DNA from: Podarcis liolepis
Taxonomy: Eukaryota
Direction: 5' to 3' (one strand)
DNA length: 64,000 nucleotides
Assembly: GCA_965112155.1 (NCBI GenBank)
Contig: OZ218101.1
The notes below the pieces were generated by a model, which worked only from the letters and a program-made list of their open reading frames with translations, did not search any database and was not told where the DNA came from. Positions 6,691-56,363 of this stretch are shown piece after piece. Made by a program: the position numbers and the translations under genes. The first letter of the stretch is position 1; every line of letters starts with the position of its first letter.

Positions 6691-7419
6691 CTGGCATTTC
6701 ACCTTTAGCATGGAATAAATACAAACAGGGCCACAGGGACACCCAAGAGAATGTGGACTGGCCCCTGGCACTTTGCTGCCTGACAAGACCGGCAGCAAAA
6801 TCTTCTTCTTTAACACAGGGAAAGGGACAGTGTCTTCCATTCCCCCTGCAGGGAGGAGGCTAGCAGAGCAGTCACAGAGCAGGAGACGGGAGCACAGACA
6901 ACTCCATCCCCAGACAGATTGGGGAAATTGTGGCCAAGGGGTTCTGCCGTCTCTCCTTCAACATATGCTGCCTGAGGTTGCCTCACTCTGATTAATGGTA
7001 CGGCAGAACTCGAAACAGCATCTGCTAAAGCAGATACAAATGCAATTCAGATCTCCTCTCACCCTGCCCCACATTTTCCCATTTCCCCCATCACCATTGG
7101 AAGAGAGGCATAAAACTAGGCAGTAACTGACAGGTGGGAAAACCATCAACATACTGAGAATTTAGAACATGGAAAAGAGTTGTGTTGCTCACAGCAACTA
7201 AATATTGCCTTGAGTATTAGAATGCCCAGCAACTGCGCAACAGAAACACAGAACTGAAGGAGGATGTTTGTATAACAAATGCACAATTATTGGGCTGAAA
7301 AACCAATGACACATTATTATCTGAAAAATGCTTCAGTTTACTGCAATAAGTGTGCTCAGTTCAAAAACATCACTTCTCACAAAGCACTGCATCAAGGAAG
7401 AACCAAAGACAAAATATGA

Positions 7420-7630
7420 ATATGTATTATATTTTCCCCTCCCCTCCTCCAAGCAGCTCTGGCAATACACAGGTCACTAACCTCATTTATCCTCATAACA
7501 ATCTTGTGAGGCAGGTTATGGCGATATGGGAATGGCTGAACCAAAGTCACTCAATGGACTTTGTAGCTAAGCAAATATTTGACTACCAGGTCTCCCCAGT
7601 CCAAACACACCGTCTACTGCACCACAATGG
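7420..7630 (-). mobile_element. Old MIR/Squam3-like SINE fragment
   Basis: cattt-atcctcataacaatcttgtgaggcaggtt...ccaaagtcactcaa...cacaccgtctactgcacca resembles a reverse-complemented tRNA/CORE SINE. Confidence 0.5.
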
Positions 7631-9406
7631 CTCCTAATTATTTGTGCACAAGTAAGCAATAGGTGTTCATGTGAGAAGACCGTGCAGATCAAATGTACAC
7701 ACCAAGAGGTAGAAGCATATTCCAGCTTCCCTATTATACACACAGAACACGAGAGAAAGTAACCAAGGTATATGATCATGCTAAGCCATCCTAATGTGAA
7801 GCCAGCAGTATTCCAAATTAAACAAATCTTTGATTTAAGTAAGTGTGCAGTTCCCTTTGAGATGCCATTTCAAGCTTTGTCCTTTCTCTTTGCCCAAATG
7901 CCAATTTGATGTCGGTCTTCTCAAATGTCACAACCATCACCATTTAAGTATCAAATAAAAGCCTTCCTTCTGCTCCTATAATTGAGGTAGTTCTCCATCC
8001 CATCCCCCAAATTAAATCGGCCTGAGATGCAACAGTATATTTAACCCAGCCTCAGTGACACCTTTCCTATACATAAATATGCCACAGGTTTAAAGTCCAT
8101 TATCTTGCAACCCTCTATGGCTAGAAACGACAGTTTTATACTATGTGAAAAGGAGTGATTTCCCACCTTCCATTCCAAGAAGGTCCCAAGGTATTGGATG
8201 TTAATGTCATGACATTTTTAGGCATAGAAAAGCTTTTAGGTTATCCAGAGAATGTTTTATGGCTCCCATTGAGCCTTGGTGAGCATTTGAGCCAGTGGTA
8301 AATGGATGTATCTATTTTTACAGGCAAGAACAGCATGAAACGAGAGGGCAGAAAAATACAATGGAAACTAGAAAAGCTTTCCACACTAGCTGAATGCAGT
8401 GCACTTTGCTTGTGCAAAGTACACTTTCCCAGAAGGTTCAAGTACAAAACAAAATGCATTGCAGTAGATATATTTAATCTACATTTTCCAAGCACATAAT
8501 ATCCAGACATCATGAACATATGAAGCTTAGTCATGAAAGGAGTAGGAGCGTTGCTCCACCTCATCCATTATTGTCATTTCTGCTGGCAGTAAGACTAAGG
8601 TCACAGGCCAGGGATTTCTTAGCTCTGCAATGTGAGATCTTTGACAAAGAGATGGCAGGAGATAATCTGGGACTTTTTGCATGGTAATCTTATACTCTAC
8701 CACTGAGCAATGTCCTTCGTCCCCACCAAAGGACAAGCTTCTGTTCTTAACATTTAAGCAGACTGCCCCAACTACTCACTGACCCTTATTATACCCAAGC
8801 AGCGAGGAAATGCAGGGCGGCAGTGCCTACCCAGGTTTGGTTTCCTTTGGAAGGAGGTTAGTGAAGGCTTGTTGTGTTCTGTAATATTTGACTTAATTGA
8901 CTGCGCTGCAGTTCAACATGTGGGGGGCCACAGATTCTTTATCCCTGGCCCACATCAGGTCTCCAGAGAAAGGCAGACAGGCCACCAAAATGTTCCCGCA
9001 GTTGCAGATCCCCACACCCAGCTCTCTGCCTCTTGCTCTGCCCCTCTCTTATTCCTCACTCAAATCTCTGGTTTCCATTTCTTCTTTTCACCCACAGACC
9101 TAGATCACATCTAGGAAGAGCAAGAGCAAGCAAAGGAAAGTAAAAAATACACACACCCTTTCAGGTATTTCCTAGACCAGTGTTTCCCAACCTTTTTTGG
9201 GCAAAGGCACACTTGTTTCATGAAAAAAATCTCGAGGCACACCACCATTAGAAAATGTTTAAAAAATTAACTCTGTGCCTATATTGACTATATATAAAGT
9301 AACTCTCTTTAATAGGAATCAAATAAACACAAAGAAAGTATTTTATAATTACTTTATTATGAAATAGTAAGTAAACAGAAATATGAAAAATTATAAAATA
9401 CTTTAT

Positions 9407-9532
9407 TCAGTGCGCAACCTGGGCCTGTTTGGCTGAACACAAAGCTGATATTCTGGCTGGAATCGAAGAAAGACACACACGTAGCTCTTCGTCAACAGCT
9501 CTCAGTCTCTCTCTGTATTTAGTTTTTATAGC
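9407..9532 (-). pseudogene. C-terminal 41 codons of a Charlie/Buster (ZBED5/SCAND3-like) hAT transposase
   Basis: Minus-strand translation [41 protein letters not shown], matching the Buster-family tail pattern IKTK.R.RL....LRV.LS.I.PRI..LC..KQAQ.SH*. The stop TGA overlaps AATAAA (9402-9407). Not in the ORF track. Confidence 0.88.
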
Positions 9533-9744
9533 AAATGAAGGAAGAGTAAGCAGGCTGGGGTGGGTTAAGTAAGGGCTGAAAGTGCCTAGATGAAGTGGGG
9601 GAAGCTAGAGAGGAGGTACATTCTGACGTTTGAGGATAGACTAGGTTCTTTATGTGAATGATAGGTGAGTTATTTGACAGATCGAACTGAGAGCAAGGTG
9701 GGGCTTGTGTAGCTGGGGTGGACATGAATGTTTGGGGTGCAAAC

Positions 9745-10569
9745 CCCAGGCCGGCCAGGTCCGAGGGGGGGGGGCAGGGAGAGACGGGCCTGCCTGCCTC
9801 TGCCTGCGCTGTGGTGTGTTTTGCCCCGACCGACGGACGGACCGACCTGCCAGCTGTCTCCGCAGTAGCAGCGCGGACTGGAGCTCCGTCATTCTCCCCG
9901 CCGGTGCCCGGGGAGGGGAGTGTGGGGTGGCTGCTGTGGAAGCGACGGCGTGCTCCTCCTCCTCCTCCTCCTCCACTTGCCGGGCTAGAGCCAGCCGGCT
10001 AGCGCTTGCCCCTCCTTGCTCGAGCCGACCCCGCCGCCGGGGGCCTTCCCGTCCTCTCAGCGGCGGCGCCTCACGTCCCTCGTCCGGGGGTTGGGAGGGG
10101 GCTGGGGGGGAGGAAGGGGGCGAGGGGGAGCAGCCGCCGCCGCTCCTGAGGAGATTCTGAGGCGGTGGCGGGCGACGCGTGGCGGAAGAGGAGGGGTCCC
10201 GCCAGCCCCGCGTTTCTCTCTCTCTCTCCCTCACGGAAACCTTCCCCTCAGCTTCTGCCGCTTTTTCTCTTCTTTCCCTCTTCCTTTTTTTTTTTTAAAA
10301 AAAAATGAAAAATCTCTCCTTTCTCTCTTTTCCAGCCCCCCCTCCCCTCTTCACGGAATTTCACTGCACTCGGGCGCCGCGGCGCGCAGGCGCACTGCTC
10401 GCTCCTCTTTCCGCGCAGGTGCCTTCTCTCGCTCTTTCGCCTCCTTTTCTTTCTCTCTCGATGGTCCGCCTACAAAGGAGCGAGGGAGGCGCCCGCCATG
10501 TTTGGATTTGCATCCAGCAGGAGATGCCGCCGCCCCGCCTCTCGCCGCCTGACTCGCCCGCCTCCCTCC
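9745..10569 (-). promoter_or_regulatory. CpG island: captured UBE2G1 promoter/5'UTR/intron-1 start
   Basis: Very GC- and CpG-rich against CpG-poor flanks. NRF1-like GCGCAGGCGCA (10384-10394), YY1-like CGCCATGTT (10494-10502), ETS-like GGCGGAAG (10181-10188), GC boxes and (GAG)n in the 5'UTR. Confidence 0.75.
9847..9892 (-). pseudogene. UBE2G1: Captured coding exon 1 of ubiquitin-conjugating enzyme E2 G1 (46 nt), followed by a GT splice donor
   Basis: ATG at 9892 gives MTELQSALLLRRQLA+G, the N-terminus I recognise from vertebrate UBE2G1 (MTELQSALLLRRQLAELNKNP...). It is followed by GCAG|GTCGGT (phase-1 donor), after which homology stops. No exon 2 in the window. Confidence 0.9.
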
Positions 10570-12506
10570 CACGGCACATCAGCCAACGTCTCACGGCACA
10601 CTAGTGTGCCGCGGAACACCGGTTGGGAAACACTGTCCTAGACATTCAGAAAGCATATCTGGGCTGTGTCACCACCAAGTTCCCAAAACAAAAGGCCTGT
10701 CCAAGCCCTGAATCTCACAACATAACAATGTTTATCCAATATTTAAAGACATTTCTGTATGCCATTGCAAATTCAGGAGCAAATATTCCTTCATAACTTG
10801 CTGTGATGGTAAACATATTATAAAGAGGACCCTAGGCCTAGGACTTTTTTCAGCTAAGCTAGGAGTTGCAGCTGAAGAGCCAAACATGTATACCACTGAA
10901 CTGCATACAGCTAGACAGTCCCATGTTGTGGGGTGGGGGAGAAAGCAAACCTCCCATTTCAGGCGGGGATTTGAAAGAAAAGAGAAAATGGCACAGCTCC
11001 TTCTGTCACTGGCAGCTGGCTTCAGGATACGAGAAGTTATAACCATTTTTCTGTAACTTGACCACTCTTATTCATGCCGGAAGAGCCGCTATGTCTACAA
11101 ATTTCACCCAATTCTGTTAAAATAAAGTTTGAGCCATTTTTTATTTCTAAATACTGACACAGGGGAATTGAACAGATATCAAAAGTACAACAGCTGCCCT
11201 TATGGGGAAAGTACAGCAGCTAGCTGTCTGAAATTTAACTGAGTTCATGCCTCCAGAAGGAGTGACTGCTAATTTAATCAAATTCTGGCCAAAATAATAA
11301 CAAAAACTATAGACAATTCTGGGGTGTGGTTTTTTTTTGGGGGGGTGTCCAGATTAGAGATGGTCGGCTCCCTGGACTATAATTTGATAGGTTTTAGCCA
11401 ATACTCTGTGCAATATTCATCTACTTCTGTCAAAAGTGGAAAGGGTTATCACAGATTTCCAAATAGTGAATGGGGGAAATGAAAGAGACCTGGACTGCGG
11501 AGCCACATCAGACGACCTCCAAATATTGGTCCAGCCCAAATTAAGCTGTTTCACAAAGCACCAAATTGGGGTCCAGACCAATCTTGTGGTCAGCACACTG
11601 ATTTTTAAATCTCTCTGATAAAATTCCACATATAGCATGATTCAGATGTATCCATGTTGGAGATCCTTTGATTCCAATAAGAGTTAAGAACAAGTTTTGA
11701 CTTTTAAGAAGGGCTTTAGCTTGAAATTTAGTATTTGATATTCTGTTGTGCCAGAATATTTATTTTCCTCTGAACCTTCTGTTGCAATAGCCATGGTATT
11801 AATTCAAGGACAAATGCCTGCTTCTTTATAAACTTGAATTAGTAAATTGATCCTCTTTGCCCAGCATGTTTTTAATGAACTCTGAGATAAAATTTGATAA
11901 GTTCATGAAAACAATTACTGGTAAATTAGATAGCACAATGAACAAGAGGCACTAATATAGTAGAAGCTATTCAGTGCATTCAATAAACCCACGTGCACTG
12001 GATTGTGCAAATAAAATTCTACCATACAGTGGCAATTGTATGATGATGCAATGATTAATACTGGATTTGCAATTTTTAAAGGCTTTTATTTGCACCACAT
12101 TCTTGTATGATGTTGCAAGAGGTCAAGAGAACATTCCACTGCAAGGACATATCTGACTACAAATTATCAAAATGAAATTGGGATCAAGGTTCAGGTATCT
12201 GAAATGATGGCAAGTGTAACCACTGGAAAGATATTTCTTTTAAATATATATATGCACATGCCCTGAGACATTTATTATGAGGAGTCATGTCTCAACCTTA
12301 GACACATGGGCTCAAGTCAGCACACTAGGGCTGTCTTCCCACTTACATACAGTCAATTCAATTAATCTGAATGAGGGTCATTTCCATAAATTTGCTTGGA
12401 GTTAAATAGATCCAAGAGAAGGAAAGTATTTTAGAGACTATGCTTAACTTTTAAATAGTCAGTGCTGAAAGTGAAAAAAGCTAGTTCCAATAGATTTATT
12501 ACTTCC

Positions 12507-12578
12507 AATTGGATAGCTCAGTTGGTTAGAGTTGGATCTAGATGATCCACAGGGTCCCTTTCCAATTCTATGATTCTG
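12507..12578 (+). mobile_element. Internally deleted tRNA-head/CR1-tail SINE (Squam2-like)
   Basis: A-box head gatagctcagttggttagag is joined directly to the CR1-type tail ttggatctagatgatcc..ggtcccttt.ccaattctatgattct. Confidence 0.6.
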
Positions 12579-12824
12579 TTTCCTGCCCTGTTTCCTAGGA
12601 GTTCAATGCAGCCATTTTGCCTCAAAGGCCACTCTGTTAAGATAGCCTATGCTGATAAAGACTTGACCAAGGTCACACAGTCTGGCACTCTGACATTCTT
12701 CTAGAATACATTTTTTTCCAGACGAGGTCATTCCTTTTTAACCAGATACCTATTCAGACATGCATACAAATTCAGATGTGCTGTGGTCAAAATCTGACTT
12801 GCAATCAAATGGAATTACCCAAAT

Positions 12825-28500: not shown

Positions 28501-29603
28501 CCCCCCACTTCATTGCCTTCAAGGAAAGACCGGGAATAAAAGCAGTTGAGTGTGTGAGTCTCTTGAAAGAGCCACAAATGAAGTGGGAGTTTTCTTAAGG
28601 AGAGAAAATATCCGAGCTTTGCAGGTGGGATGGAGAAGAACTTTTACTTCCCAACATGCACTGAACCAGTTGAAAAGCAGCCGGTGCCAGAAGCTTCTTC
28701 ATATTCTATTTGTCTTGCTGTATTCATGACATGAACAGTAGGTTTCCTTTCCAATCCTATTTGCTAACCCTAAACAGTCTATAAAAATATACAACCCAAT
28801 GGCAAGAAAGCCATAGATCACTGAATCACTGATACCTTCCAATGGTCCTCCTACCCTCTGTAGAACATTAACATGTGTTTCTCAGTAAGAAAGTCGCCAA
28901 TATATATATTTTTAAAGCTACGAGCTGTTCCTGGTATAAAACTGAGTTATAAACTATTCTGAGGTGGAGGAATGTGACTGAACACCTAACGAGGTTCAAG
29001 TATATTGTAACAATGTCAAGAAATCATTTTTCATGCATTAAATTATTCTACCATCTCTATTCTTCCCTGTGGCTGACAGATGTTTGGAGGAGAAAATACC
29101 TCTAATTCATTCTCACTAAGCTGTCCCACACATCTCTTTTTCATCTAAAAAGAATCCCCTTGTGATTCCACAAATGTGTGTACATTCTGCACAGCCCAAG
29201 GACATACACAAAAATTTGCAAGGGGCAAGTGAGGGAGAACCCAAATCCTATCAGACAGTAAGAAAGGAAAACACCCTTCTGATTTCAATTTGTTTTGCCC
29301 ACATATCTCCATGAGAGGCTCCCGTGCTGGAAATAAATCATAGGAGGCATTTGTGATAACAGAATGTGTCTGCTTTCTCACATCTATCATTACATTAGAG
29401 GCGTTTCTTGCTAAACACCTCTGGAGAAAAATCTACATTTTAAGAAGATTGGGTATTGTAGATTTAGCAACATTGTACAGCTGAAAAAAGTGCACAAAAG
29501 GGCAAAGCAAATGATCAGAAGGCTGGAGCATTTCCCTGTTATGTTACAACATGAGTGGGGAGTTAAATAAATAATGGATGGGGAAATGATACAGATGTAC
29601 ATA

Positions 29604-30414
29604 CTGTATTTTTCGCCCTATAGGACACACTTTTTACCCTCCAAAAATGAAGGGGAAATGTGTGTGCGTCCTATGGGGCGAATGCAGGCTTTCGCTGAAG
29701 CCTGGAGAGCGAGAGGGGTCGGCTCCAGGCTTCAGGAAGCTCTGCGCAACCCTCGGGAGTCCCCGGCTCAGCACAGATCTGCTGCCATCCGGAGCGGGGC
29801 GCTAAGTCCCGCCCCGCTCCAGATGGCGGTGCGGAGCTGCCTGCCATCCCAGGACTGCAGGCAGATCTGCGCTGCCATCCGGAGCGGGGCGCTAAGTCCC
29901 GCCCCGCTCCAGATGGCGGCGCGGAGCTGCCTGCTGTCCCGGGACTGCAGGCAGATCTGCGCCGCCATCCGGAGCAGGGCGCTAAGTCCCGCCCCGCTCC
30001 CGATGGCCACGCAGAGCTGCCTGCAGTTCTGGGATCAGCGCAGCTTTGCGCGGCCACCGGGAGCAGGGCGCTAAGTCCCGCCCCGCTCCGGATGGCGGCG
30101 CAGAGCTGCCTGCAGTCCCGGGATCAGCGCAGCTCTGCGCGGCCACCGGGAGCGGGGCGCTAAGTCCCGCCCCGCTCCGGATGGCGGCGCAGAGCTGCCT
30201 GCAGTCCCGGGATCAGCGCACTTCTCCCCATCGCCAGCCCCACAACCTCGGGGGACAGCAGGGAGGCAGAGAGTGCCTTCCCACTGTTCCCCGACCTGGT
30301 TCTTCCAGCCCCGCACCTGGGGGGAAAATAATTTTTTTTTCTTTATTCCCCCCCCACCCAAAAAAACTAGGTGCGTCCTATGGGCCGGAGCGTCCTATGG
30401 GGCGCAAAATACGG
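29604..30414. mobile_element. TcMar-Tc2-like non-autonomous DNA transposon with internal GC-rich satellite
   Basis: Ends ctgtatttttcgccctataggac / gtcctatggggcgcaaaatacgg, TA TSDs (29602-29603, 30415-30416). Related short element at 52542-52711. Confidence 0.88.
29772..30220. repeat. About 5 tandem copies of an 89-90 bp self-complementary GC-rich unit
   Basis: Unit gcagatctgcgccgccatccggagcggggc-gctaagtccc-gccccgctccggatggcggcgcagagctgc-ctgcagtcccggga...; for example 29861-29950 and 29951-30039. Confidence 0.92.
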
Positions 30415-33400
30415 TAATTATGCATGATTTGGAGAAAGTGAGTAGAAAGATGATTTGCTTCCTGCCCCATAGAAGTTCAGGACAGACAAACAAAGTACTT
30501 GGTCACATGGGACATATTTAAACTATGGAATTAACTTCCACAAGATGATGTGGTGGCCATCACCTTGAGTGGCTTTAAAAGGGATCTGGACAAATGTGTG
30601 AAGGATAAAACCACTACTAGTCACGACAGAGATTATATATGGCCTCCAGGATCATAAGCGGCATGCCTCTGAAGACCAGTCTCTGAACTGCAGTGGAAGA
30701 GGACCATAGGTCTCCTCGGCTGCCTGCAGGCTCCCTGGCGCATCTGGTTTGAGAACAGGGGCCTGGATTAGGTGGGCTGTTGGGCTGGTCAGCAGACCTC
30801 TTATTATGTTCTTATGGCAGGGGAGACGGTGAGTTGTGACTATGTGAATAATACAACTGGAAAATCTCAAAACCAAGCAGGGGAGGAGACAAAGTAGGAG
30901 ACAAAGGGACAAGAACAATGGAAGGTAGGAAACAGGAAGCAGAAGACGGCTTAATAATTTAGAATGGGGAAATTTATCTAATCAGGAAGTGTCATTCAGT
31001 CAGAATCTATTATCAATTCCCCAGCTCTAAACAGATTTAGTCTAAACAGGAACAACATCCTATACTGAATAAACACATTCTACAAAATGTGTATTTTGAA
31101 TCTAGACTTGAAGAAATGCTGCAAAACAGAATGGTACTGTTGAGAAGACCACCCTATATTCTTACACAGCTATAATGGAGAAATTCGCTTAACCAGGATT
31201 TGAAGCTGATAGCAACTCTGGCTAAATGGAAATCTGATGAACTTTCACCTCTGTGAACATCTGCGCTGGAGCAGTAATGCCTCACATTGATTAAGGTGAG
31301 CCAGGAGAGTACCAATCTCATGATAGCCTAACTACAAGTTTGTTGAATCTGCACTGCTCCAACATAACTTGCGATATATTTGCGATGAATGTTGCAGATG
31401 TTCAAAAAGGCCTGAGGTGAAGTGTGGTTTAGCCACCACAGAAGCCACAGCCCAGCTGCTCATGGCGGCTGCAGCAGCTGCAAGTGAGGGGGGACAGGGC
31501 AATTGGGTCCAATCTCTGCACCAGCTCCAAGCCGGTCTGGATCAGGCCCAATGTCATGCAGCAACAGCAGCAACAGCAGTGAGACAGGCCAATATGCTAT
31601 AATTAGCACTAAATGGGGGGATGATGGTGTTGCCGTTGGTGGTGGCTTCCCAACTCCCTACAGTGCTTTTTCCATTTTACTCTTTTTTGCTATCTATTTC
31701 ACTTATTTTCTTCCTCTTTGGAAATGTTTCTTTCTCTCTTCTATAGTTGAACAGTAAGAGCATTTATCAAAAGTGGATTGTCAGACAATCCTTGGGTTCT
31801 TGCTCCTATCTATAAGGTGTCTGTAGGTAATTGTATGCATTACATAGTGCAGAATATAGTCACTGTTAATGAATTAGCAAGTACTAGAGATTGTTTATGC
31901 AGCTTTCCACAAAATTTTCATTATAGCAATAGTCTGTGCACCTCTGACAGCATTCTTGGCAGCAGTTACAGGAACAGCATCTTTGGGGAGAAAGCCATAA
32001 GGAAGAAGCTTATTAAATTTTGTAAATCATCAGGCTTGTCTGCAAATGCATGGCTTTGTAGTTGATTCAGTTGTTGGCTTTGAAAGTCTGCTATTAGGTC
32101 CATTAAACAGGCCCAGAGTTTAACCTGCCTTGTAAATTACAGAGAGAAGAAAAGGAGACACAGCACCTTGTTTTTAAAAGAATACAAGACCTGCATTGCA
32201 GTACACAAAGAAGTATGTTGAGAGCACATGCTGCATACTGTTCTACATGAATGTAAACTGATGGACCTGGAGCCTGGATCTTGATCACCAGGTATGCAGA
32301 CACCCAGTTCTCACTAGTAAAACCGAGCCAGGCTTTGCTATAAGATGGCTAAGAACCAGATCATGTGCTCAGAGCCTAGGCTCAAGTATTTCACCAGGAT
32401 ACAAGGCAATTTCTCTCTGTACTGGAAGTGGGAAATGAAGCATTAGCAACATCTGGGTTCATACCTGTGGAAAGGAAGGTAACATTGAACAATACTGTAC
32501 AAATAATCTGCTTGCATGGGCATAGACAGGATTTATATTGTTACCTGTGACGCGAGTGGTCAGTTTGTGGACTTTCACTCAGTTGGGTTGCCAGGGGCAT
32601 CATCCCCACCAAACTGCCACACCTTTGCAGCCTCCTCCCTTTACACCTGACAAAAACTCCTCCCTCTCCCTTTACAGCACCCCAAACCCCCCTCCCACCA
32701 GAGCTGACCCCAAATCACCCCTCCCTTTGCACCTTGCCAACCCCAAACTCCACCTCCAGTTACACCACTGGCAGGGGAGAGGGGAATGAAGGGGAGAAAC
32801 TCTTTATCCCCTTCACCATCCCTTTGAACTCACACACATGCCGAGAAAGAGAGAGAGAGCGCTGTGGGAGGCTATTGCAGTGAGGAGGGGAGAAAGAAGT
32901 CTGCGTTTCAAAATGTCAACTTTTTCTCTCCTTCCCAAAGCAGCAGCCATGGCTGTGGCAGCAGCGTGGAGGAGAGGAGACCAAGAGCAGACTTTCTCTC
33001 TATCAGCAGTGGCAGAGGGACCGTAGGAAGGCTTGAAATCCCACCCTGCCTGCCTGCCCAACTGCATCCACCTCCAGTTCCTTCCTCCTCACTCACCCGC
33101 TTGGCCGAAGACCAGCCCAAGAAAGAGGAGCTGGCAGGACATGCTGGGGGAGCTCCTCAGAGCAGCCAACCAGAGCTGCTGCCACTTTTCCTCCTTGGCC
33201 TGAGGCTGAAATGGCAGCGCTGGTATGAGGTGGCTGTTTCTCTGAGACCCAACTGGACTGGCCATCACCTGCACCACTTGCCTGGGCCTCCTTTGCCTGC
33301 CCAAACCGCCTGCCTGCTGTTCTGTTGTCATGCTACAATACGTGTGGCCAGAAGTGTGTTGACATTCTTACAATCTTATTATATACTAATATTTACTTAA

Positions 33401-42944: not shown

Positions 42945-45257
42945 GCACACATACAGAATTTTACCTGTGAGTCCTGCAAGATCTGCCTCCTGCTTTGCTG
43001 ATTTAACTCTAGAAAGGCAGGAGGCCAAATTGATGATGCCAATGGTAAGGATGTAAAAAGAACCAAAGACCGGTTTAATTCATCATCCTGTGTATGGCCA
43101 GATACACATGGAAAATTCACCAAAATCTTCACTCCCATTTCATCATTTGTGAATGCAATTATGATGGTTTTGAATAACCCTAAAGTTTTCTGGAGAAACG
43201 GACTCTCCCTTCCAGTTTCATTTCCACCTCACTTTTTAGAGCTTTCCTCTTTTGAAGTCAAATGTGACTGTGATGGACTTCCTGGGCCACTTGCAAGTAT
43301 GCTGAATATGATAACACTAAATTTGAATTCAAGATCCATTCCAGACAATGAATGAGAAACATTATGCTTTAAAAAAGAAAAAGCCTCATAATACTCTCTC
43401 AAGGTAACTTTACCGTAGTTGAATTGCTAAAGGAATTATTAGATAGACATCTTTTGATAAAGCAATTCTCAGCAGATTTTAATTTCCTTGGGGGAGGGGA
43501 GGGGAGGAGAAATCTAACTCTCAAAGCTTTTTGTGTCTCTGTAACTGACACTCCAGATGCAAAAGATAAGGAAAAGGCATTATTTTCAGGAACATATTGG
43601 CTCACTTTTGCCTTTATGTTTTTCATTTATGAGGACGAAGAGCTAAGCAAGCTCTCAAGCAAAAAGCAGTGTGGTTTTGTGATTAGAACAAAGTGGGGGC
43701 CAGAGAGAGAGAACCAAAAATAAAGGATGACTTTTAATGTTTTTTCTGGATCTGCTGTGTGACTGTAGAGTTGTTCTACTCTTCTGAGCTTTTCCAAATG
43801 CAAAATGGGATGAGACATAAGCCTTTATTCCTACTGTTTTGAAATTCGTGTTGATAGCAAATCCAACACAAAGAGAAGTCTACATTTATTTCAGCCATGC
43901 TGTTGTGGCCAGGAAAACCTTCATTTTAAAGTAGCTCCTCATATACTCTCTCAGTGCAACACACACGGTTCAAACATCCTTCCTCTTGTCCCACAACTTC
44001 TCCCCAGGAAAACCTGCTCTTTACTGCTGAATGCCAGTCAGGTTTTTTTCTGGATTGACATTTACCCCAATTTAGTGCTAAAGAGTGCATTTTCCAGGAT
44101 AAAGTGGTGGGGCAAAGGCAAAACCAACTGGACCCATGCCAAGCAAGGGAGAAATCACTCTGACCTGTGGCTTCTAGACTCAGGGCAAGCGGAACAGTGG
44201 ATGAGCCCCTGTCCTGGTTCACCTCCAAACAGCAGATACAGAATGCAGCGAGCCATGTTTCACACAGTGGTAAATTAATCAATGCAGTCTTCTTTATGAA
44301 CAGAATAATACTTTTACTTGAAGAAAATAAACTTGTTCATAAACAGCATAGTTAAAGAGCATGCACAGAGTGCTCATAGCAGCTATCTTAGTCTTCAGAG
44401 AGGCACAGATCTTAGTTTCTGAATAACTGGAGCCTGGAGCCACTCTGCCTGCAACTCACATACGTACTGAGCTGAGACTGACTCAGACTCGGAAGTTACA
44501 TTTACAGGGAACCCAAGACGAGTCACAGTGACCTGGCAGTTTACTGCTAACAGTTACTGCTAGCAGGCTTGAAATGATTGTGTAGGACCAGACAGCCCTT
44601 CAAACAGGGTTCTTCTCTGTAAAGAAGGAAGACAAGCCCCCTAGGCCCACCCCAAACATTAAGGTGCAGCTGTTTCTAAGCAGGAGCATTAAGTCAAAGT
44701 GCATTATTTGCCCAAGAGGTGAAGAAATCAATAGTAAAATTCAGAGTGACTTTATAAAAGTAAGGATGTACCTCTTAAGTTACCAATTACAAGAAGTTTT
44801 ACTTTTTTGACAGCCACAAATCATTAATGGAAACATTTAGGGGTCAAAATGATTCACTACAAGCTATGTCTTTAAAAGGGTTTTTTTATGAATTTATGCT
44901 ATTATCACACATTTAAAAGATAAAACCAAAACCATTACTGTTTTGGTTAGTTGGAGGCAGAGTGAGAAAAAGAGTCAAAGTGAGTTTTGCACTTGATGGA
45001 GAAAATTGTTATTGTTATGTATTGAAGTTCTCACCCTGGCCACCAGGAGTGTTGTGTATGTAGTTTTCACTCAGGTCCACATCAGTTATTTTAGGCGGGA
45101 AACCCTGGGTTGTTGTTGCTACATTGTTGACAGCCAGCTGCCTATAAAAGCAGGCCGGCTGAGCTGTTTGCTGTTCAGTTCTGCTCCAGCTTACAAATAA
45201 AGAGCTGCTTTGGAGATATCGCTGCGTCGTCTGCTATGTCTACCCACTATTTAACAC

Positions 45258-45437: not shown

Positions 45438-46100
45438 ATGGCTTCACTCGTGCCTCTACCGCCGTTTGCCCCAGCCTCTGAATCATGGGACTCCTACCTC
45501 GCTCGGTTCGACTGCTACCTCCAAGCAAATGAGCTGACAAGTGGGTCTGAAGAGCAGAAGCGGGGCCTCTTCCTCAGCCTTTGTGGACCTGAGGTGTTCA
45601 AGACGGCCCGAGCATTGGTTGCGCCTTTAGCAGTCCAGGCAGCACCGTGGGACACGATTCAAGAGAAGCTCTGCAACCACTACGCGCCAAAGCCATCCAA
45701 GATTGCTGCCCGCCATGCATTCTACCACCGGAACCAGGCAGAGGGGGAGTCAATCAAGAACTACACCACCGCCCTCCGACAGGATGCAATGCACTGCGAG
45801 TTCCGAGACTTAGACGATGCCCTGATGGATCAAATCGCCTGCAGGGTCCAGGACATCCGTCTGCAACAGCGTCTCCTCGCCAAGCCAGACCTCACACTGC
45901 AGAAAGCCATTGAGGAGGCTGTGGCCTCAGAAGCTGCTGAACGCTCTGCCCAGGAGATCCGCAAGGTCAGCAGCCTGCGTCACATTACCACCGTGCCTGA
46001 CCGTCCACCAAGTCCACTCACGGCAGTTCCTTCGACAGCAGCGGAGCCAGGGAACTCGGGCTCAATGCCACATTTGGTTGCACCACAGTCGCAGCCATAA
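45438..46100 (+). CDS. Gypsy Gag N-terminal/capsid ORF (220 aa) fused to a Pro/Ser-rich pol tail
   Basis: FAPASESWDSYLARFDCYLQAN...FLSLCGPE...RHAFYHRNQAEGESI..Y...LR..A.HCEF...LDDAL.DQ...IQQRLLAKPDLTLQKA is the classical K02A2.6-like Gag. Downstream, after a stop, SRVSKCPAYLKDYV matches the integrase C-terminal end. Confidence 0.8.
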   Translation: MASLVPLPPFAPASESWDSYLARFDCYLQANELTSGSEEQKRGLFLSLCGPEVFKTARALVAPLAVQAAPWDTIQEKLCNHYAPKPSKIAARHAFYHRNQAEGESIKNYTTALRQDAMHCEFRDLDDALMDQIACRVQDIRLQQRLLAKPDLTLQKAIEEAVASEAAERSAQEIRKVSSLRHITTVPDRPPSPLTAVPSTAAEPGNSGSMPHLVAPQSQP

Positions 46101-49100
46101 TCGGAAGGCCACCCGGACTCTGGTACTGGCCCTCGGCAATGCAGCAGGGTTTCCAAGTGCCCAGCATATTTAAAAGACTATGTTCACTGGACAAACTGCA
46201 CATGTAAAGCTGTATGGTGAATAGGGTCAATTAATATGCTTATGTTCCTTACTGAAACCAATAAGGGTATTGCTGTATGTAATGGAACCACTATGATTGT
46301 AACTAATGCCCTATCTCGGTGGGGAAAAGTGTTATGTATTGAAGTTCTCACCCTGGCCACCAGGAGTATCATGTATATAGTTTTCACTCAGGTCCACATC
46401 AGTTACTTTAGGTGGGAAACCCTGGGCTGTTGTTGCTACAATATTGACAGCCGGCTGCCTATAAAAGCAGGCCAGCTGAGCTGTTTGCTGTACAGTTCTG
46501 TTCCAGCTTACAAATAAAGAGCTGCTTTGGAGAAATCGCTGCGTCGTCTGCTATGTCTACCCACTATCCTGGCTCCCAGAAATAGCCTGTAAGATACTTG
46601 GCTGGCTTAAATGGTGAAACTGTCTGTTAACTTCTTTTCTGTCTGTTCGACCTGTGTATATGTCAACAAACTGCTAATTTCAACAGACATTAAAGCCTCC
46701 AGAACCCTTTCCTAAAAAGGGAACAGATTCTGTCAAATGTCACTCCTAGAATATCTTACCATTCACAGTAGGGAGATGCAGGAGAGCCATGAAAAGGTCT
46801 GCGTCGTATCCTTCCCTATGGAGCCAGGGTAGCCTTATCACCAGGAGCCATTAGTAGGATTAAAATGCCCAGGTAGTTCTACAGCATCTGAAGGGTACCA
46901 CATTGGTTTCCCCTGGCCCCTACCTAGAACACAGCTGCAGCCTTGGGAAAGAAACCTAGAGGGAGAATGGACTTTTGTCTACAGCGACGTGAGTGGTTTT
47001 TGTAAGTTGTCTTGTAAGGAGTTCTCCTAAACACTGGGTGAAAATGTTTTAAATAATAATAAGAACTGATTGAGCAAATAAATAAATAAACAACACACAA
47101 TTTGGAGAGTCTTGGCCAGGCAAGAATCATGTAGGAATTTTGAAAGATGTTAAAAGATTAGTGAAATCTCTCAAGGGGGTGTCTCACTGCTAAGCAATTT
47201 TAAGAAATGTAAATCCATCTTGTTTTACTGAGTCTAGTAGGGAGAATATATATTATAAATAAACACCAGCTATTTTTTAAAAAGAAAAAAAACCCACCAA
47301 TGTGACACAAGACATTAGGCAGAGAAAATTGAATGTGGGTGTGGAGACACTGCACACAAACATGCACATGTGTAATTAAACCTTTAAAGTACAGCTGAGT
47401 GATTTTCTTACCCCAGTCCAAGATTTATTAATACACATGTCAATGTCAAATCTAATAAAGGCACTGTGTTAATTGTAATTGTAGAGCCAGCTGCTAACAC
47501 CTGTCAAGGTATTTCTGGCGCAGAATATGCTCATTGTGTGTGAGCCTGGTGACAGCCCTGAGTACAAACAAGGCAGTCTTTTATTTCCACACTCTGTATT
47601 TCAAAAGTTGGTTTAAGTGTCAGATGAGTTGCTTGCTTTGCATCACTAAAACCATGAGATGTGACGCTGTTCTGTGCAAACAGAAATCCAACACTCAAGA
47701 AAGGCCCAAGAGTAAAATAGCATGAGATTTTCTAATAAGCACTAGGTAGAGTTGCCCATGGAATTTGCCTAAAGCAAACTCCGAGGTCAACTTGAAGAGT
47801 CCTGCTGTGGCAAAAAAAATTATTATTAAGGACCTAATGTAACGAAGTGCTGTACAACAGCAGATGCCCACAGGCTTACAGTCAAGAATAGAAGCCATCA
47901 TCTTTTATTCAGAAAATGCTTAAAGTTCAGCACTATACAAAAATACTTAAAACACAGAAACATAAGAGAATGGGAAGCTCGATTCCTGACCTTTGTATCA
48001 GTAACTACAGCAGCCATGTGGGATACCTTGGCTCAAGAACTGATGGATGGCTGTGTTTGGGTTGCTGCTTTTAATGTAGTCCATCACTGGGTTCTGTGGT
48101 TGAGTGGATGGGATTGAAGCCAGCCAATTCAATCTGCTTCCTCCCTCTCTACCAACAAGCAGACCAAACAATGAAACTCTGTGATCCTGTTTTTATTCAC
48201 TAGCCTGTTTCTTGGCATTGGGGAGCCTCCAGACCACGGGCCTAGGCCATTCCCTACAAGCCACACCCACCAGCCCCAAGGCCAACAGCACATCATGTGT
48301 GGAGCAGGTATGGACATGGCGACAGAGGAGCAAGCGGGAACTTAATGTGAGCTCCTGCCTCTTCCTTCACAAGCAGGGCTCCCTTTCACTGACAGGAAGC
48401 CCCAATATGTAGCTGTGGGGGTTCTTTTGCTCCATTTTGAAGACGCTTGCATTCAAATTGCTTCCTAAAATGGAGTGCTCTGAAATGGAGCAAGCTGCTT
48501 TGAAGTTACTCTTCCAGGCAGGGGTGCCAATTTGAATAAAATATGGGAGGGGCAGGTAAGGCCTGACCTGCATAATCAATCACAAGACACAGCACACAAA
48601 CACACCTTTTGAATGGTATTGTTCATCAACTTGGGGGGGGGGGGCAGGATACTGTATTTTCTACAATGTCTGTTGTGGGGTCTTTTAGAACCAGGTGAGG
48701 CAAGCTGATTCAAAACCTGGAATAGGAGACTTTGAAATGTCCCAGCTGTCTTCTGCTAGACTGGGAAATTTTAGAGCTTCAGCAGGAAGCAAGCAGAACT
48801 GGAGCCCAATGCAGTACGCAAAAGATACTGCTTTGCTCAACCCCATTCTAATCACCACACTATCCAGGCACTCATTTCCCCCTAATTTCAGGTAAACTGA
48901 AAATATGCTCCAAATTAGGTACAGATCACAGATACTATTTTCCCAAAGGTATCATCCACCACTCTAATAAAGTAACTTGTAGCAAATTTCTATCTTTTGC
49001 TAATGTAAGGCAGAGCTTTAAACATTCCACTTATGTCTGTGAATATTAATGTTTCCTTAGCAATTAAGGCAATGAGTAGATAGTGATAATGAGGAAATGC

Positions 49101-50127: not shown

Positions 50128-51325
50128 TGTTGTTGTTGTTGTTTAGTCGTGCCTGACTCTTCGTGACCCCATGGACCAGAGCACACCAGGCACTCCTGTC
50201 TTCCACTGCCTCCCGCAGTTTGGTCAAACTCATGCTGGTAGCTTCGAGAACACTGTCCAACCATCTCGTCCTCCGTCGTCCCCTTCTCCTTGTGCCTTCC
50301 ATATTTCCCAACATCAGGGTCTTTTCCAGGGAGTCTTCTCTTCTCATGAGGTGGACAAAGTATTGGAGCCTCAGCTTCACAATCTGTCCTTCCAGTGAGC
50401 ACTCAGGGCTGATTTCCTTCAGAATGGATCAGTTTGATCTTCTTGCAGTCCATGGGAGTCTCAAGAGTCTCCTCCAGCACCATAATTCAAAAGCATCAAT
50501 TCTTTGGTGATCAGCCTTCTTTATGGTCCAGCTCTCACTTCCATACATCACTACTGGGAAAACCATAGCTTTTACTATACGGACCTTTGTTGGCAAGGTG
50601 ATGTCTCTACTTTTTAAGATGCTGTCTAGGTTTGTCATTGCTTTTCTTCCAAGAAGCAGGCATCTTTTAATTTCGTGGCTGCTGTCACCATCTACAGTGA
50701 TCATGGAGCCCAAGAAAGTAAAATCTCTCACTGCCTCCATTTTCCCCCTTCTATTTGCCAGGAGGTGATGGGACCAGAGGCCATGATCTTCGTTTTTTTG
50801 ATGTTGAGCTTCAGACCATATTTTGCGCTCTCCTCTTTCACCCTCATTAAAAGGTTCTTTAATTCCTCCTCACTTTCTGTCATCAGTGTTGTGTCATCTG
50901 CATATCTGAGGTTGTTGATATTTCTTCCGGCAATCTTAATTCCGGCTAGGGATTCATCCAGCCCAGCCTTTCGCATGATGAATTCTGCATATAAGTTAAA
51001 TAAGCAGGGAGACAATATACAGCCTTGTCGTACTCCTTTCCCAATTTTGAACCAATCAGTTGTTCCATATCCAGTTCTAACTGTAGCTTCTTGTCCCACA
51101 TAGAGATTTCTCAGGAGACAGATGAGGTGATCAGGCACTCCCATTTCTTTAAGAACTTGCCATAGTTTGCTGTGGTCGACACAGTCAAAGGCTTTTGCAT
51201 AGTCAATGAAGCAGAAGTAGATGTCTTTCTGGAACTCTCTAGCTTTCTCCATAATCCAGCGCATGTTTGCAATTTGGCCTCTGGTTCCTCTGCCTCTTCT
51301 AAATCCAGCTTGCACTTCTGGGAGT
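50128..51325 (-). mobile_element. RTE-BovB LINE, 5'-truncated, RT domain with frameshift and stop
   Basis: ORFs 50728-51315 (QAGFRRGRGT..FIDYAKAFD..GVRQGCILSP..LRYADDTTL), 50429-50740 and 50087-50380. (CAA)n tail. Perfect 13-bp TSD TCAAGGGAGTAAT (50115-50127 / 51326-51338). Confidence 0.96.
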
Positions 51326-55691: not shown

Positions 55692-56363
55692 TTGCTGCAA
55701 GACAGACCCAAAAAAGAAAATAACAGAACACCTCTAGTCATCACATACAGCTCCCAAGTTAAAACAGTACAACACATCATCAGAGATCTACAACCTCTCC
55801 TGGACAATGACAGTTCTCTTTCTCAAGCTCTGGGAGGAAGACCTTTCATTGCCTACAGACAGCCACCCAATCTTAAACAACTCCTAACCCACAATAATAC
55901 TGCAACCAGACTTAACACGGACACTGGCACCAGAGCCTGCAATAAACCCAGATGCCAACTTTGCTGCCACATACACCCGGACAACATCATTACTGGCCCC
56001 AACAACATCACACATACCATCTCGGGACTATTTAATTGCTCATCATCTAACATTGTGTATGCCATCAAACGCCAACAGTGTCCTTCAGCTCTCTATATTG
56101 GACAAACAGGCCAAACCTTACGCCAAAGAATAAACGGACATAAATCTGACATCAAGAATCACAAAACAGAGAAACCAGTAGGAGAACACTTCAATCTCCC
56201 AGGACATTCTATACAAGATTTCAAAGTAGCTGTTTTACTACAAAGGAATTTCAGAAATAGACTGGAAAGAGAAGCTGCTGAATTGCAACTCATTACCAAA
56301 CTTAAAACCATGGAGAGACATGGTCTGAACAAAGACATTGGATTCTTATCTCATTATACATGA
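55692..56363 (+). CDS. Penelope ORF C-terminus with GIY-YIG endonuclease (partial, no own ATG start)
   Basis: RTPLVITY...IAYRQPPNLKQLL...CNKPRCQLC...CSSSNIVYAI..QQCPSALYIGQTGQTLRQRINGH...VGEHFNLPGH...RLEREAAE..LI..L.T...GLN. Confidence 0.85.
   Translation: MLQDRPKKENNRTPLVITYSSQVKTVQHIIRDLQPLLDNDSSLSQALGGRPFIAYRQPPNLKQLLTHNNTATRLNTDTGTRACNKPRCQLCCHIHPDNIITGPNNITHTISGLFNCSSSNIVYAIKRQQCPSALYIGQTGQTLRQRINGHKSDIKNHKTEKPVGEHFNLPGHSIQDFKVAVLLQRNFRNRLEREAAELQLITKLKTMERHGLNKDIGFLSHYT

Follow-up and report, generated by a model that had tools for sequence, protein, structure and literature searches.

A candidate Pack-hAT transposon carrying the 5′ end of UBE2G1 in the lizard Podarcis liolepis

Architecture of the element

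The DNA analysed here (the window) is a stretch of 64,000 nucleotides from contig OZ218101.1 of the Podarcis liolepis assembly GCA_965112155.1, and between positions 9170 and 10643 it holds an element with the ends of a hAT transposon and an interior that includes the first coding exon of the ubiquitin-conjugating enzyme gene UBE2G1. The element measures 1,458 bp and lies between two perfect 8-bp copies of TCCTAGAC, its target site duplication (TSD); both of its ends are terminal inverted repeats (TIRs) that match perfectly over 15 bp, exactly as the initial annotation of this DNA, made from the sequence alone, had described them. The sense strand of the element is the minus strand of the window, and its parts are as follows.

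9170 to 9177, no strand: left TSD copy, TCCTAGAC, with a central TA; the 8 letters at the empty-site joint fit either side
9178 to 9192, minus: TIR at the element 3′ end, CAGTGTTTCCCAACC, starting CAGTG; 15 of 15 positions complementary to 10621-10635
9193 to 9406, minus: hAT 3′ untranslated and subterminal region, with GGCACA repeats at 9205-9212, 9235-9242 and 9274, and AATAAA at 9407-9402
9407 to 9534, minus: transposase gene remnant; last 41 codons at 9532-9410, stop at 9409-9407
9535 to 9846, minus: cargo, read as the start of UBE2G1 intron 1 (about 312 bp), beginning with the GT donor at 9846-9845
9847 to 9892, minus: cargo, coding part of UBE2G1 exon 1; ATG, 15 codons and 1 base, phase 1
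9893 to 10525, minus: cargo, CpG-island DNA upstream of the ATG (presumed 5′ untranslated region and promoter); GC 0.65, CpG observed/expected ratio 0.82
10526 to 10620, minus: hAT 5′ subterminal region, with CACGGCACA repeats at 10572-10578, 10594-10600 and 10605-10611
10621 to 10635, minus: TIR at the element 5′ end, the reverse complement of CAGTGTTTCCCAACC; match 15 of 15
10636 to 10643, no strand: right TSD copy, TCCTAGAC, identical to the left copy

The ends of hAT transposons are short TIRs of about 10-25 bp that begin with YARNG. The present element combines an 8-bp TSD, a 15-bp TIR starting CAGTG, transposase-derived sequence and a precise empty site (see below). A perfect bracket of this kind was found once in the window by two scans of its full length, one for 8-mer pairs up to 8 kb apart with adjoining inverted ends and a looser one for hAT-type ends with one TSD mismatch allowed; the other returns were tandem-array artefacts and one weak 12/14 pair. 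We calculate that about 3e-5 cases of a perfect 14/14 TIR next to two matching 8-mers would be expected by chance. The motif GGCACA occurs at six sites within about 100 bp of the two ends versus 33 sites in the whole 64 kb (both strands), a pattern like that of subterminal transposase-binding repeats, which these putatively are. The TSD has TA at positions 4-5 and, as a single instance, fits the Buster-type consensus nnnTAnnn (PMC3517528). Together with the homology of the transposase tail, this TSD type makes a place of the element in the Buster/Charlie group, as assigned earlier, probable.

For comparison, contigs covering 7000-12800 were examined in two DNA runs (X1 and X6, which derive from two further samples of lizards, the organisms being coded A and E), one probable RNA assembly (X15) and one raw RNA run (X23); the word depth of these contigs is a rough guide and no direct copy number. 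Two further 8-mers that adjoin ends of the same family in these data, CACTAGGT and CTCTAGAG, likewise have a central TA. In one X1 contig, the right end of the family (10635) is joined to a left end (9178) with exactly the 8 letters CACTAGGT between them, which could represent two head-to-tail elements sharing a target site or possibly an end-to-end junction.

The arms and the cargo meet at boundaries that can be placed by comparison with related elements. On the left, other elements diverge exactly after 9534 (at loose contig ends), which refines the earlier limit of about 9535 to a junction at 9534/9535; past this point, an unverified reading by eye of 30 letters in other family elements gives ..LCEMSFSSMI before AIKTK, versus ..LCELSFSSMI in the full-length transposase P0107 described below. 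On the right, all four runs contain contigs or reads that are common to 10526-10635 and differ before 10526. Because family members share this segment, the 5′ arm is probably about 110 bp rather than about 65 bp long, and the earlier right limit of about 10570 should probably be moved to a position nearer 10526. A short form of the family, a miniature inverted-repeat transposable element (MITE), joins 9200 to 10572. The internal junctions are spanned by independent contigs (9401-9599, 9505-9876, 10317-10531 and 10317-10586).

Empty sites in two related samples

In both X1 and X6, contigs pass directly from 9169 to 10636 and so omit 1,466 bp, the overlap being 8 letters, and the resulting empty allele holds exactly one TCCTAGAC. 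The X6 joint lies in a single contig of 2,221 nt that spans both flanks at a depth of 10.9, equal to that of the surrounding single-copy DNA, and the X1 empty-site contig has a depth of 31.7 versus 28-32 in its flanks; both samples thus look homozygous for the empty site. Their flanks diverge from the window by 0.4-0.7% (X1) and 1.2-1.5% (X6). With a single TCCTAGAC in the empty allele, the duplication is the product of insertion and does not reflect a misjoin. A Pfam search of 20 open reading frames (ORFs) and an Rfam search of the window revealed no host gene near the insertion. The element landed in single-copy, non-coding DNA, either after the split from the two related samples or as an insertion that is still polymorphic. 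The initial annotation had proposed recent transposition and predicted an orthologous site with a single TCCTAGAC in related lizards; the exact empty site in two samples supports the former and provides the latter.

These sites also bear on the two ways in which the annotation itself had supposed that it could be wrong, namely that the segment is the native first exon of UBE2G1 merely flanked by transposon ends, or that an assembly chimera placed a repeat here. The lack of an exon 2 in the window is uninformative and leaves room for a native gene, as the minus strand continues downstream for just 9 kb; however, all 1,466 bp including the exon are precisely absent from the locus in two related samples that keep one TCCTAGAC, the segment is multicopy, and it adjoins a transposase remnant at 9534. 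Because the first exon of an essential gene cannot be absent from its own locus in close relatives, the element is not native UBE2G1, and we give this explanation practically no credence. Repeat misassembly deserves hardly more: the joins to the flanks come from this assembly and neither of the other samples has the insertion, but a misjoin would not yield a perfect 8-bp duplication of a target that is single in the empty alleles, and the internal structure, whose junctions independent contigs cross, is reproduced in three independent runs. We consider a chimera very improbable.

A cargo probably derived from the 5′ end of UBE2G1

The cargo extends from 9535 to about 10525 (some 990 bp) and has a GC content of 0.63 and a CpG observed/expected ratio of 0.74, compared with ratios of 0.11-0.18 in the flanks and 0.26 in the whole window, in agreement with its earlier description as CpG-island DNA. 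On the minus strand, an ATG at 9892-9890 opens the peptide MTELQSALLLRRQLA; exon 1 ends at 9847, followed by GT at 9846-9845, and leaves a coding sequence of 46 nt with a split codon starting with G, which fits the next UBE2G1 residue, Glu16. All 15 residues of MTELQSALLLRRQLA are identical to residues 2-16 of PDB entry 6D68_A, ubiquitin-conjugating enzyme E2 G1 (E 0.011), which was the sole PDB match at E≤10 for a 20-residue query across the exon end. The peptide had already been recognised in the initial annotation as the UBE2G1 N-terminus, and this identification holds. Exon 1 is contiguous with the intron piece in independent contigs (9572-9877 in X6, 9505-9876 in X15), and the CpG island runs unbroken into the ATG.

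The catalytic core of the ubiquitin-conjugating (UBC) fold with its active-site cysteine is not present in the element, and the unspliced reading frame stops after 80 residues unrelated to that fold. Because only 15 UBE2G1 codons are present, the cargo is to be read as a gene fragment, not as a gene copy. We presume that the approximately 630 bp upstream of the ATG represent the promoter of UBE2G1 itself. The presence of intron and upstream DNA supports capture at the DNA level, as had been proposed from the sequence; retroposition is ruled out by the GT donor, the 312 bp of intron-like DNA and the 630 bp of upstream island. Exact-pattern scans of metagenomes for the 9534/9535 junction and the exon-intron junction gave no match, nor did a protein search with the 194-residue ORF that spans the cargo.

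Transposase remnant and a full-length partner

Read on the minus strand, 9532-9410 runs into ...KQAQVAH, and the stop codon at 9409-9407 is overlapped by the AATAAA at 9407-9402. A phmmer search with these 41 residues against 1.84 billion representative sequences (E≤1e-3) returned 74 matches, nearly all at the extreme C-terminus of the matched protein. The long matches P0027, P0066 and P0068 carry DUF4371 and Dimer_Tnp_hAT domains, and DUF4371 is on record for P0113 and P0107; the source names of the relatives include HAT C-terminal dimerisation domain protein, SCAN domain-containing protein 3-like (SCAND3-like), ZBED5-like and FAM200A-like. A PDB search with P0027 gave no match.

The tail is identical at 41 of 41 residues to the C-termini of P0113, a Podarcis muralis protein of 674 residues (UniRef A0A670JTK9), and of P0107, a protein of 626 residues from run assemblies that represents a cluster of 82 members; the two proteins are 96.8% identical over 626 residues. 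Since full-length transposases (626-674 residues), including the one of Podarcis muralis, end in this same tail, an autonomous partner family exists, and judging by these sequences wall lizards possess an intact partner transposase, as the initial annotation had anticipated in suggesting a search for a complete transposase ending in KQAQVAH. By tblastn, the element itself keeps only the last 41 transposase codons, and since no more than this remnant is present it is non-autonomous.

Residues 1-48 of P0113 form an N-terminal extension ahead of the MEKFLKRK start seen in P0107, which may be a gene-model artefact or an upstream exon. Identity of the lacertid transposase is 85.6% to a protein of Xenopus laevis, 84% to one of the tunicate Styela clava, 82% to one of the spider Stegodyphus, 80-81% to teleost proteins and 91-95% to snake and gecko fragments. 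This patchy distribution at high identity suggests horizontal transfer of the transposase.

Copy number and age

Single-copy flanks have depths of 28-32 in X1 and 10.9-11.7 in X6, compared with 448-454 and 494-731, respectively, for contigs of the cargo, corresponding to about 15 times and 45-65 times single copy. Depth thus suggests that the loaded element is present at roughly 15-45 copies per genome, in support of the earlier suggestion that it may be multicopy. Parts of the arms are far more abundant. The tail at 9353-9534 reaches a depth of 1,840 in X1, and the summed depth of the bins with the two ends exceeds 2x10^5 in X1 and amounts to about 0.8-1.1x10^5 in X6. The word depth of the region 9193-9406 is thousands of times that of single-copy DNA, which is why we regard the 3′ subterminal region as shared with a large MITE family; the extreme ends are common to a very large family of this kind.

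Relative to the sequence that most family members have in the four runs, this copy is substituted at 9701, 9928, 9932, 10007, 10066, 10073 and 10420, about 7 substitutions per kb, and shows a 3-base change in run length. At five of the seven substituted positions, the family has CpG where this copy has TpG or CpA. Divergence outside CpG sites is approximately 0.2%. The copy is young but not pristine, and its loss of CpG has begun: of the earlier view that transposition was recent and the CpGs undecayed, the recency is upheld by the empty site, while the CpGs prove to be partly decayed. At single-copy depth, both DNA runs contain contigs (844 and 846 nt) that match 9572-9743 at about 93% and continue for some 670 nt that cannot be aligned. 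They may be the parental UBE2G1 intron or locus or an old fixed copy and are candidates only; whichever origin they have, the family is older than this insertion.

RNA from the cargo

In X23, depth across 9328-10297 is 16-22 for reads whose first mate lies on the plus strand and 0-1.8 for the minus strand, 10298-10491 is covered on both strands at about 12 each, and the flanks have zero coverage. Because coverage is flat across the donor and no splice joint is listed at a depth of about 20, most of the cargo RNA is unspliced. If the library is of the dUTP type, as our strand reading assumes, the minus-strand sense RNA would begin in the island and extend over exon 1 and the intron piece as far as the tail, with divergent antisense RNA upstream. 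Sense RNA with divergent antisense RNA is the pattern of a CpG-island promoter, and the cargo thus appears still to act as one, with RNA that would start inside the element; the opposite library protocol would need starts in the AT-rich tail, which is less coherent. As predicted from its sequence, the transcript could encode just 15 UBE2G1 residues, without the UBC fold or the catalytic cysteine.

In X15, one unitig begins exactly at 9847 and overlaps an intron-containing unitig by 30 bases, with depths of 204 for the exon contig and 153 for the intron contig. This break is a branch point and hints at use of the donor, some exon-bearing molecules continuing elsewhere; such molecules might be mRNA of the native UBE2G1 gene or else chimeric transcripts. 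A spliced product of exon 1 and the transposase tail, joined in frame through an AG at 9458-9457, was considered and is unsupported, given that the ORF is continuous from 9534, that full-length relatives are called as single ORFs and that X23 contains no such joint.

Other features of the window

Elsewhere in the window, a CpG-rich tandem array at 29758-30220 lies within a CpG island of 900 bp (29551-30450) and repeats an 89-bp unit 5.2 times. An ORF of 220 residues at 45438-46100 (plus strand), in a CpG-rich stretch, is Gag-like by eye and has no Pfam match; it is flanked by direct repeats at 45006-45200 and 46236-46517, which have near-identical translated peptides and are possibly long terminal repeats. 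A reverse-transcriptase fragment lies at 50728-51315 (minus strand; RVT_1, E 1.5e-30) and an ORF with a GIY-YIG domain at 55692-56363 (plus strand; E 3.6e-5), both of them debris of retroelements and Penelope-like elements. No host-gene domain was found by Pfam among the 20 ORFs of the window that were tested.

Discussion

We propose, with a probability of about 0.85, that the element is a non-autonomous hAT transposon of the Buster/Charlie type whose transposase gene has mostly been replaced by DNA from the 5′ end of UBE2G1, and which is recently inserted, multicopy, mobilised in trans and transcribed. The evidence supports the view taken in the initial annotation of a transposase-less element loaded with UBE2G1 exon 1, its splice donor and its upstream CpG island. 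Abortive gap repair with template switching is the usual model for the origin of plant Pack-MULEs and of the Ds derivatives of Ac. A repair-filling model has also been applied to animal Pack-TIRs (PMC8277862), and a mechanism of this kind is the best fit here. Based on this model, we propose the following hypothetical sequence of events, in which (i) an internally deleted copy would have arisen when the gap left by an excision break was filled, by filler synthesis or template switching during repair, with DNA from the 5′ end of UBE2G1; (ii) a DNA-level copy of some 990 bp would thereby have taken the place of almost the whole transposase gene, made up of the CpG-island DNA upstream, the first coding exon together with the splice donor, and some 310 bp from intron 1; (iii) the retained ends, with their 15-bp TIRs and GGCACA subterminal repeats, would provide what a transposase needs, and the intact 626-residue transposase of the same family in wall lizards would move the element in trans; (iv) each jump would create an 8-bp duplication; and (v) transcription would proceed from the island across exon 1 and the intron piece, left unspliced, as far as the transposase remnant with its stop codon and AATAAA.

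Other histories of the cargo have been weighed against this proposal. The cargo might partly be a mosaic, with exon 1 and the intron from UBE2G1 and some of the upstream CpG-rich DNA from a hAT 5′ region or a second template switch. The X6 bin 10298-10491, at 3-5 times the depth of the remaining cargo, is thus shared with other elements in that species, which speaks for such an origin; nevertheless, the X1 contigs 9572-9770, 9769-10270 and 10317-10531 have equal depths (448-454), as expected of one unit, and the island is continuous with the ATG, so that we regard a mosaic as rather unlikely. It is more doubtful still that an autonomous element first captured the cargo or has it as its 5′ region, so that the transposase would be driven by the promoter and exon 1 of UBE2G1 and 9534/9535 would stem from a later internal deletion. 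The cargo does have the same orientation as the transposase remnant, exon 1 could be spliced in frame to the tail through the AG at 9458-9457, and elements sharing the tail are about four times commoner than the cargo in X1 (1,840 versus 450). Against this, P0107 is a single ORF on contigs of up to 2.4 kb with its own MEKFLKRK start and no UBE2G1 residues, the RNA has no splice joint, and other elements with 10526-10635 continue into different DNA. A composite macrotransposon of two elements was rejected, as the left arm breaks off within the ORF and an inner TIR is absent.

Several points nonetheless weigh against our proposal of a recently inserted, multicopy, captured UBE2G1 5′ end. The joins between flank and element at this locus come from this assembly only, both other samples being empty. 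Copy number is derived from word depth and not from directly read further copies with TSDs of their own. As the data did not include the parental UBE2G1 locus, we infer the origin of the upstream 630 bp and the exact boundaries of the captured segment; if the contigs with about 93% identity are the parental intron, capture is much older than the insertion. RNA reads cannot be assigned to single copies or to the parental gene, and the strand protocol of the library is assumed.

The element belongs to a kind that has already been described; it stands out by its copy number, by being mobile at present and by a promoter cargo that looks active. Its TIR termini enclose non-transposon host gene sequence (9535-10525, with UBE2G1 exon 1), as in the elements termed Pack-TIRs. 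A survey of 100 animal genomes documented 370 Pack-TIRs in 55 of them, 208 of the 370 being hAT (Tan et al. 2021, PMC8277862). The earlier statement that such captures are rarely reported in vertebrates is therefore outdated, and holds for multicopy cases, of which there were 4 among the 370, three in frog and one in alligator, the frog example having three copies (PMC8277862). The sole lizard surveyed, anoCar2, had no Pack-TIR (PMC8277862, supplement file 4), and Pack-hAT-N8_XT of Xenopus tropicalis carries 291 bp of the CAPSL 5′ untranslated region (PMC8277862). Like these Pack-TIRs and Pack-hATs, the present element lacks a transposase, has a host gene interior and 8-bp TSDs, belongs to the hAT superfamily and is absent from the orthologous sites of relatives; in contrast to the surveyed cases, it is present at about 15-45 copies by depth, carries a whole CpG island with first exon and donor, is missing even from close relatives at this site, and is transcribed. 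Our literature search yielded no report of UBE2G1 capture or of Pack elements in lacertids.

Comparable systems are known from other superfamilies and kingdoms. HelibatN3 and other Helitrons of vespertilionid bats were reportedly described by Pritham and Feschotte in 2007. These Helitrons show a bias for the 5′ ends of genes, and promoter-bearing elements reach higher copy numbers (Thomas et al. 2014, PMC4224331). The present element resembles them in the capture of a 5′ gene end with promoter; however, they are rolling-circle elements of mammals without TIRs or TSDs and with thousands of copies, whereas here a cut-and-paste hAT of a lizard has tens of copies. It resembles plant Pack-MULEs and Ds derivatives in that internal sequence is replaced by foreign genomic DNA and mobilised in trans, and differs from them in superfamily (Mutator) or kingdom. 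A further, possible parallel is hAT-6_XT, a horizontally transferred vertebrate hAT family for which the paper describes no cargo (PMC11008031): proteins of Xenopus, teleosts, a tunicate and a spider share 80-86% identity with the partner transposase, and the species overlap with the hAT-6_XT list in Syngnathus acus, Thalassophryne amazonica and Xenopus (PMC11008031), a likeness at the level of species lists.

In vertebrates, capture by cut-and-paste transposons is known mostly from old single-copy relics, in contrast to plants, in which it is well studied. A young loaded element makes the route of capture, the methylation and spread of a captured island, and the formation of new transcripts experimentally approachable in a vertebrate. 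It is also a trap for annotation, as each copy resembles a UBE2G1 first exon with its promoter. Beyond this single family, we offer as a speculation, possible but short of probable, that it is one of many in wall lizards, in which a horizontally spreading and still active hAT repeatedly captures CpG-island promoters and first exons. If this is true, such cargo might bring an advantage to the element itself, because an unmethylated, transcribed island could leave the ends of the element open to the transposase. Dozens of active promoters that move about and bring splice donors with them would then be scattered over the genome and could start new chimeric transcripts, thereby providing a cut-and-paste counterpart of promoter shuffling by bat Helitrons.

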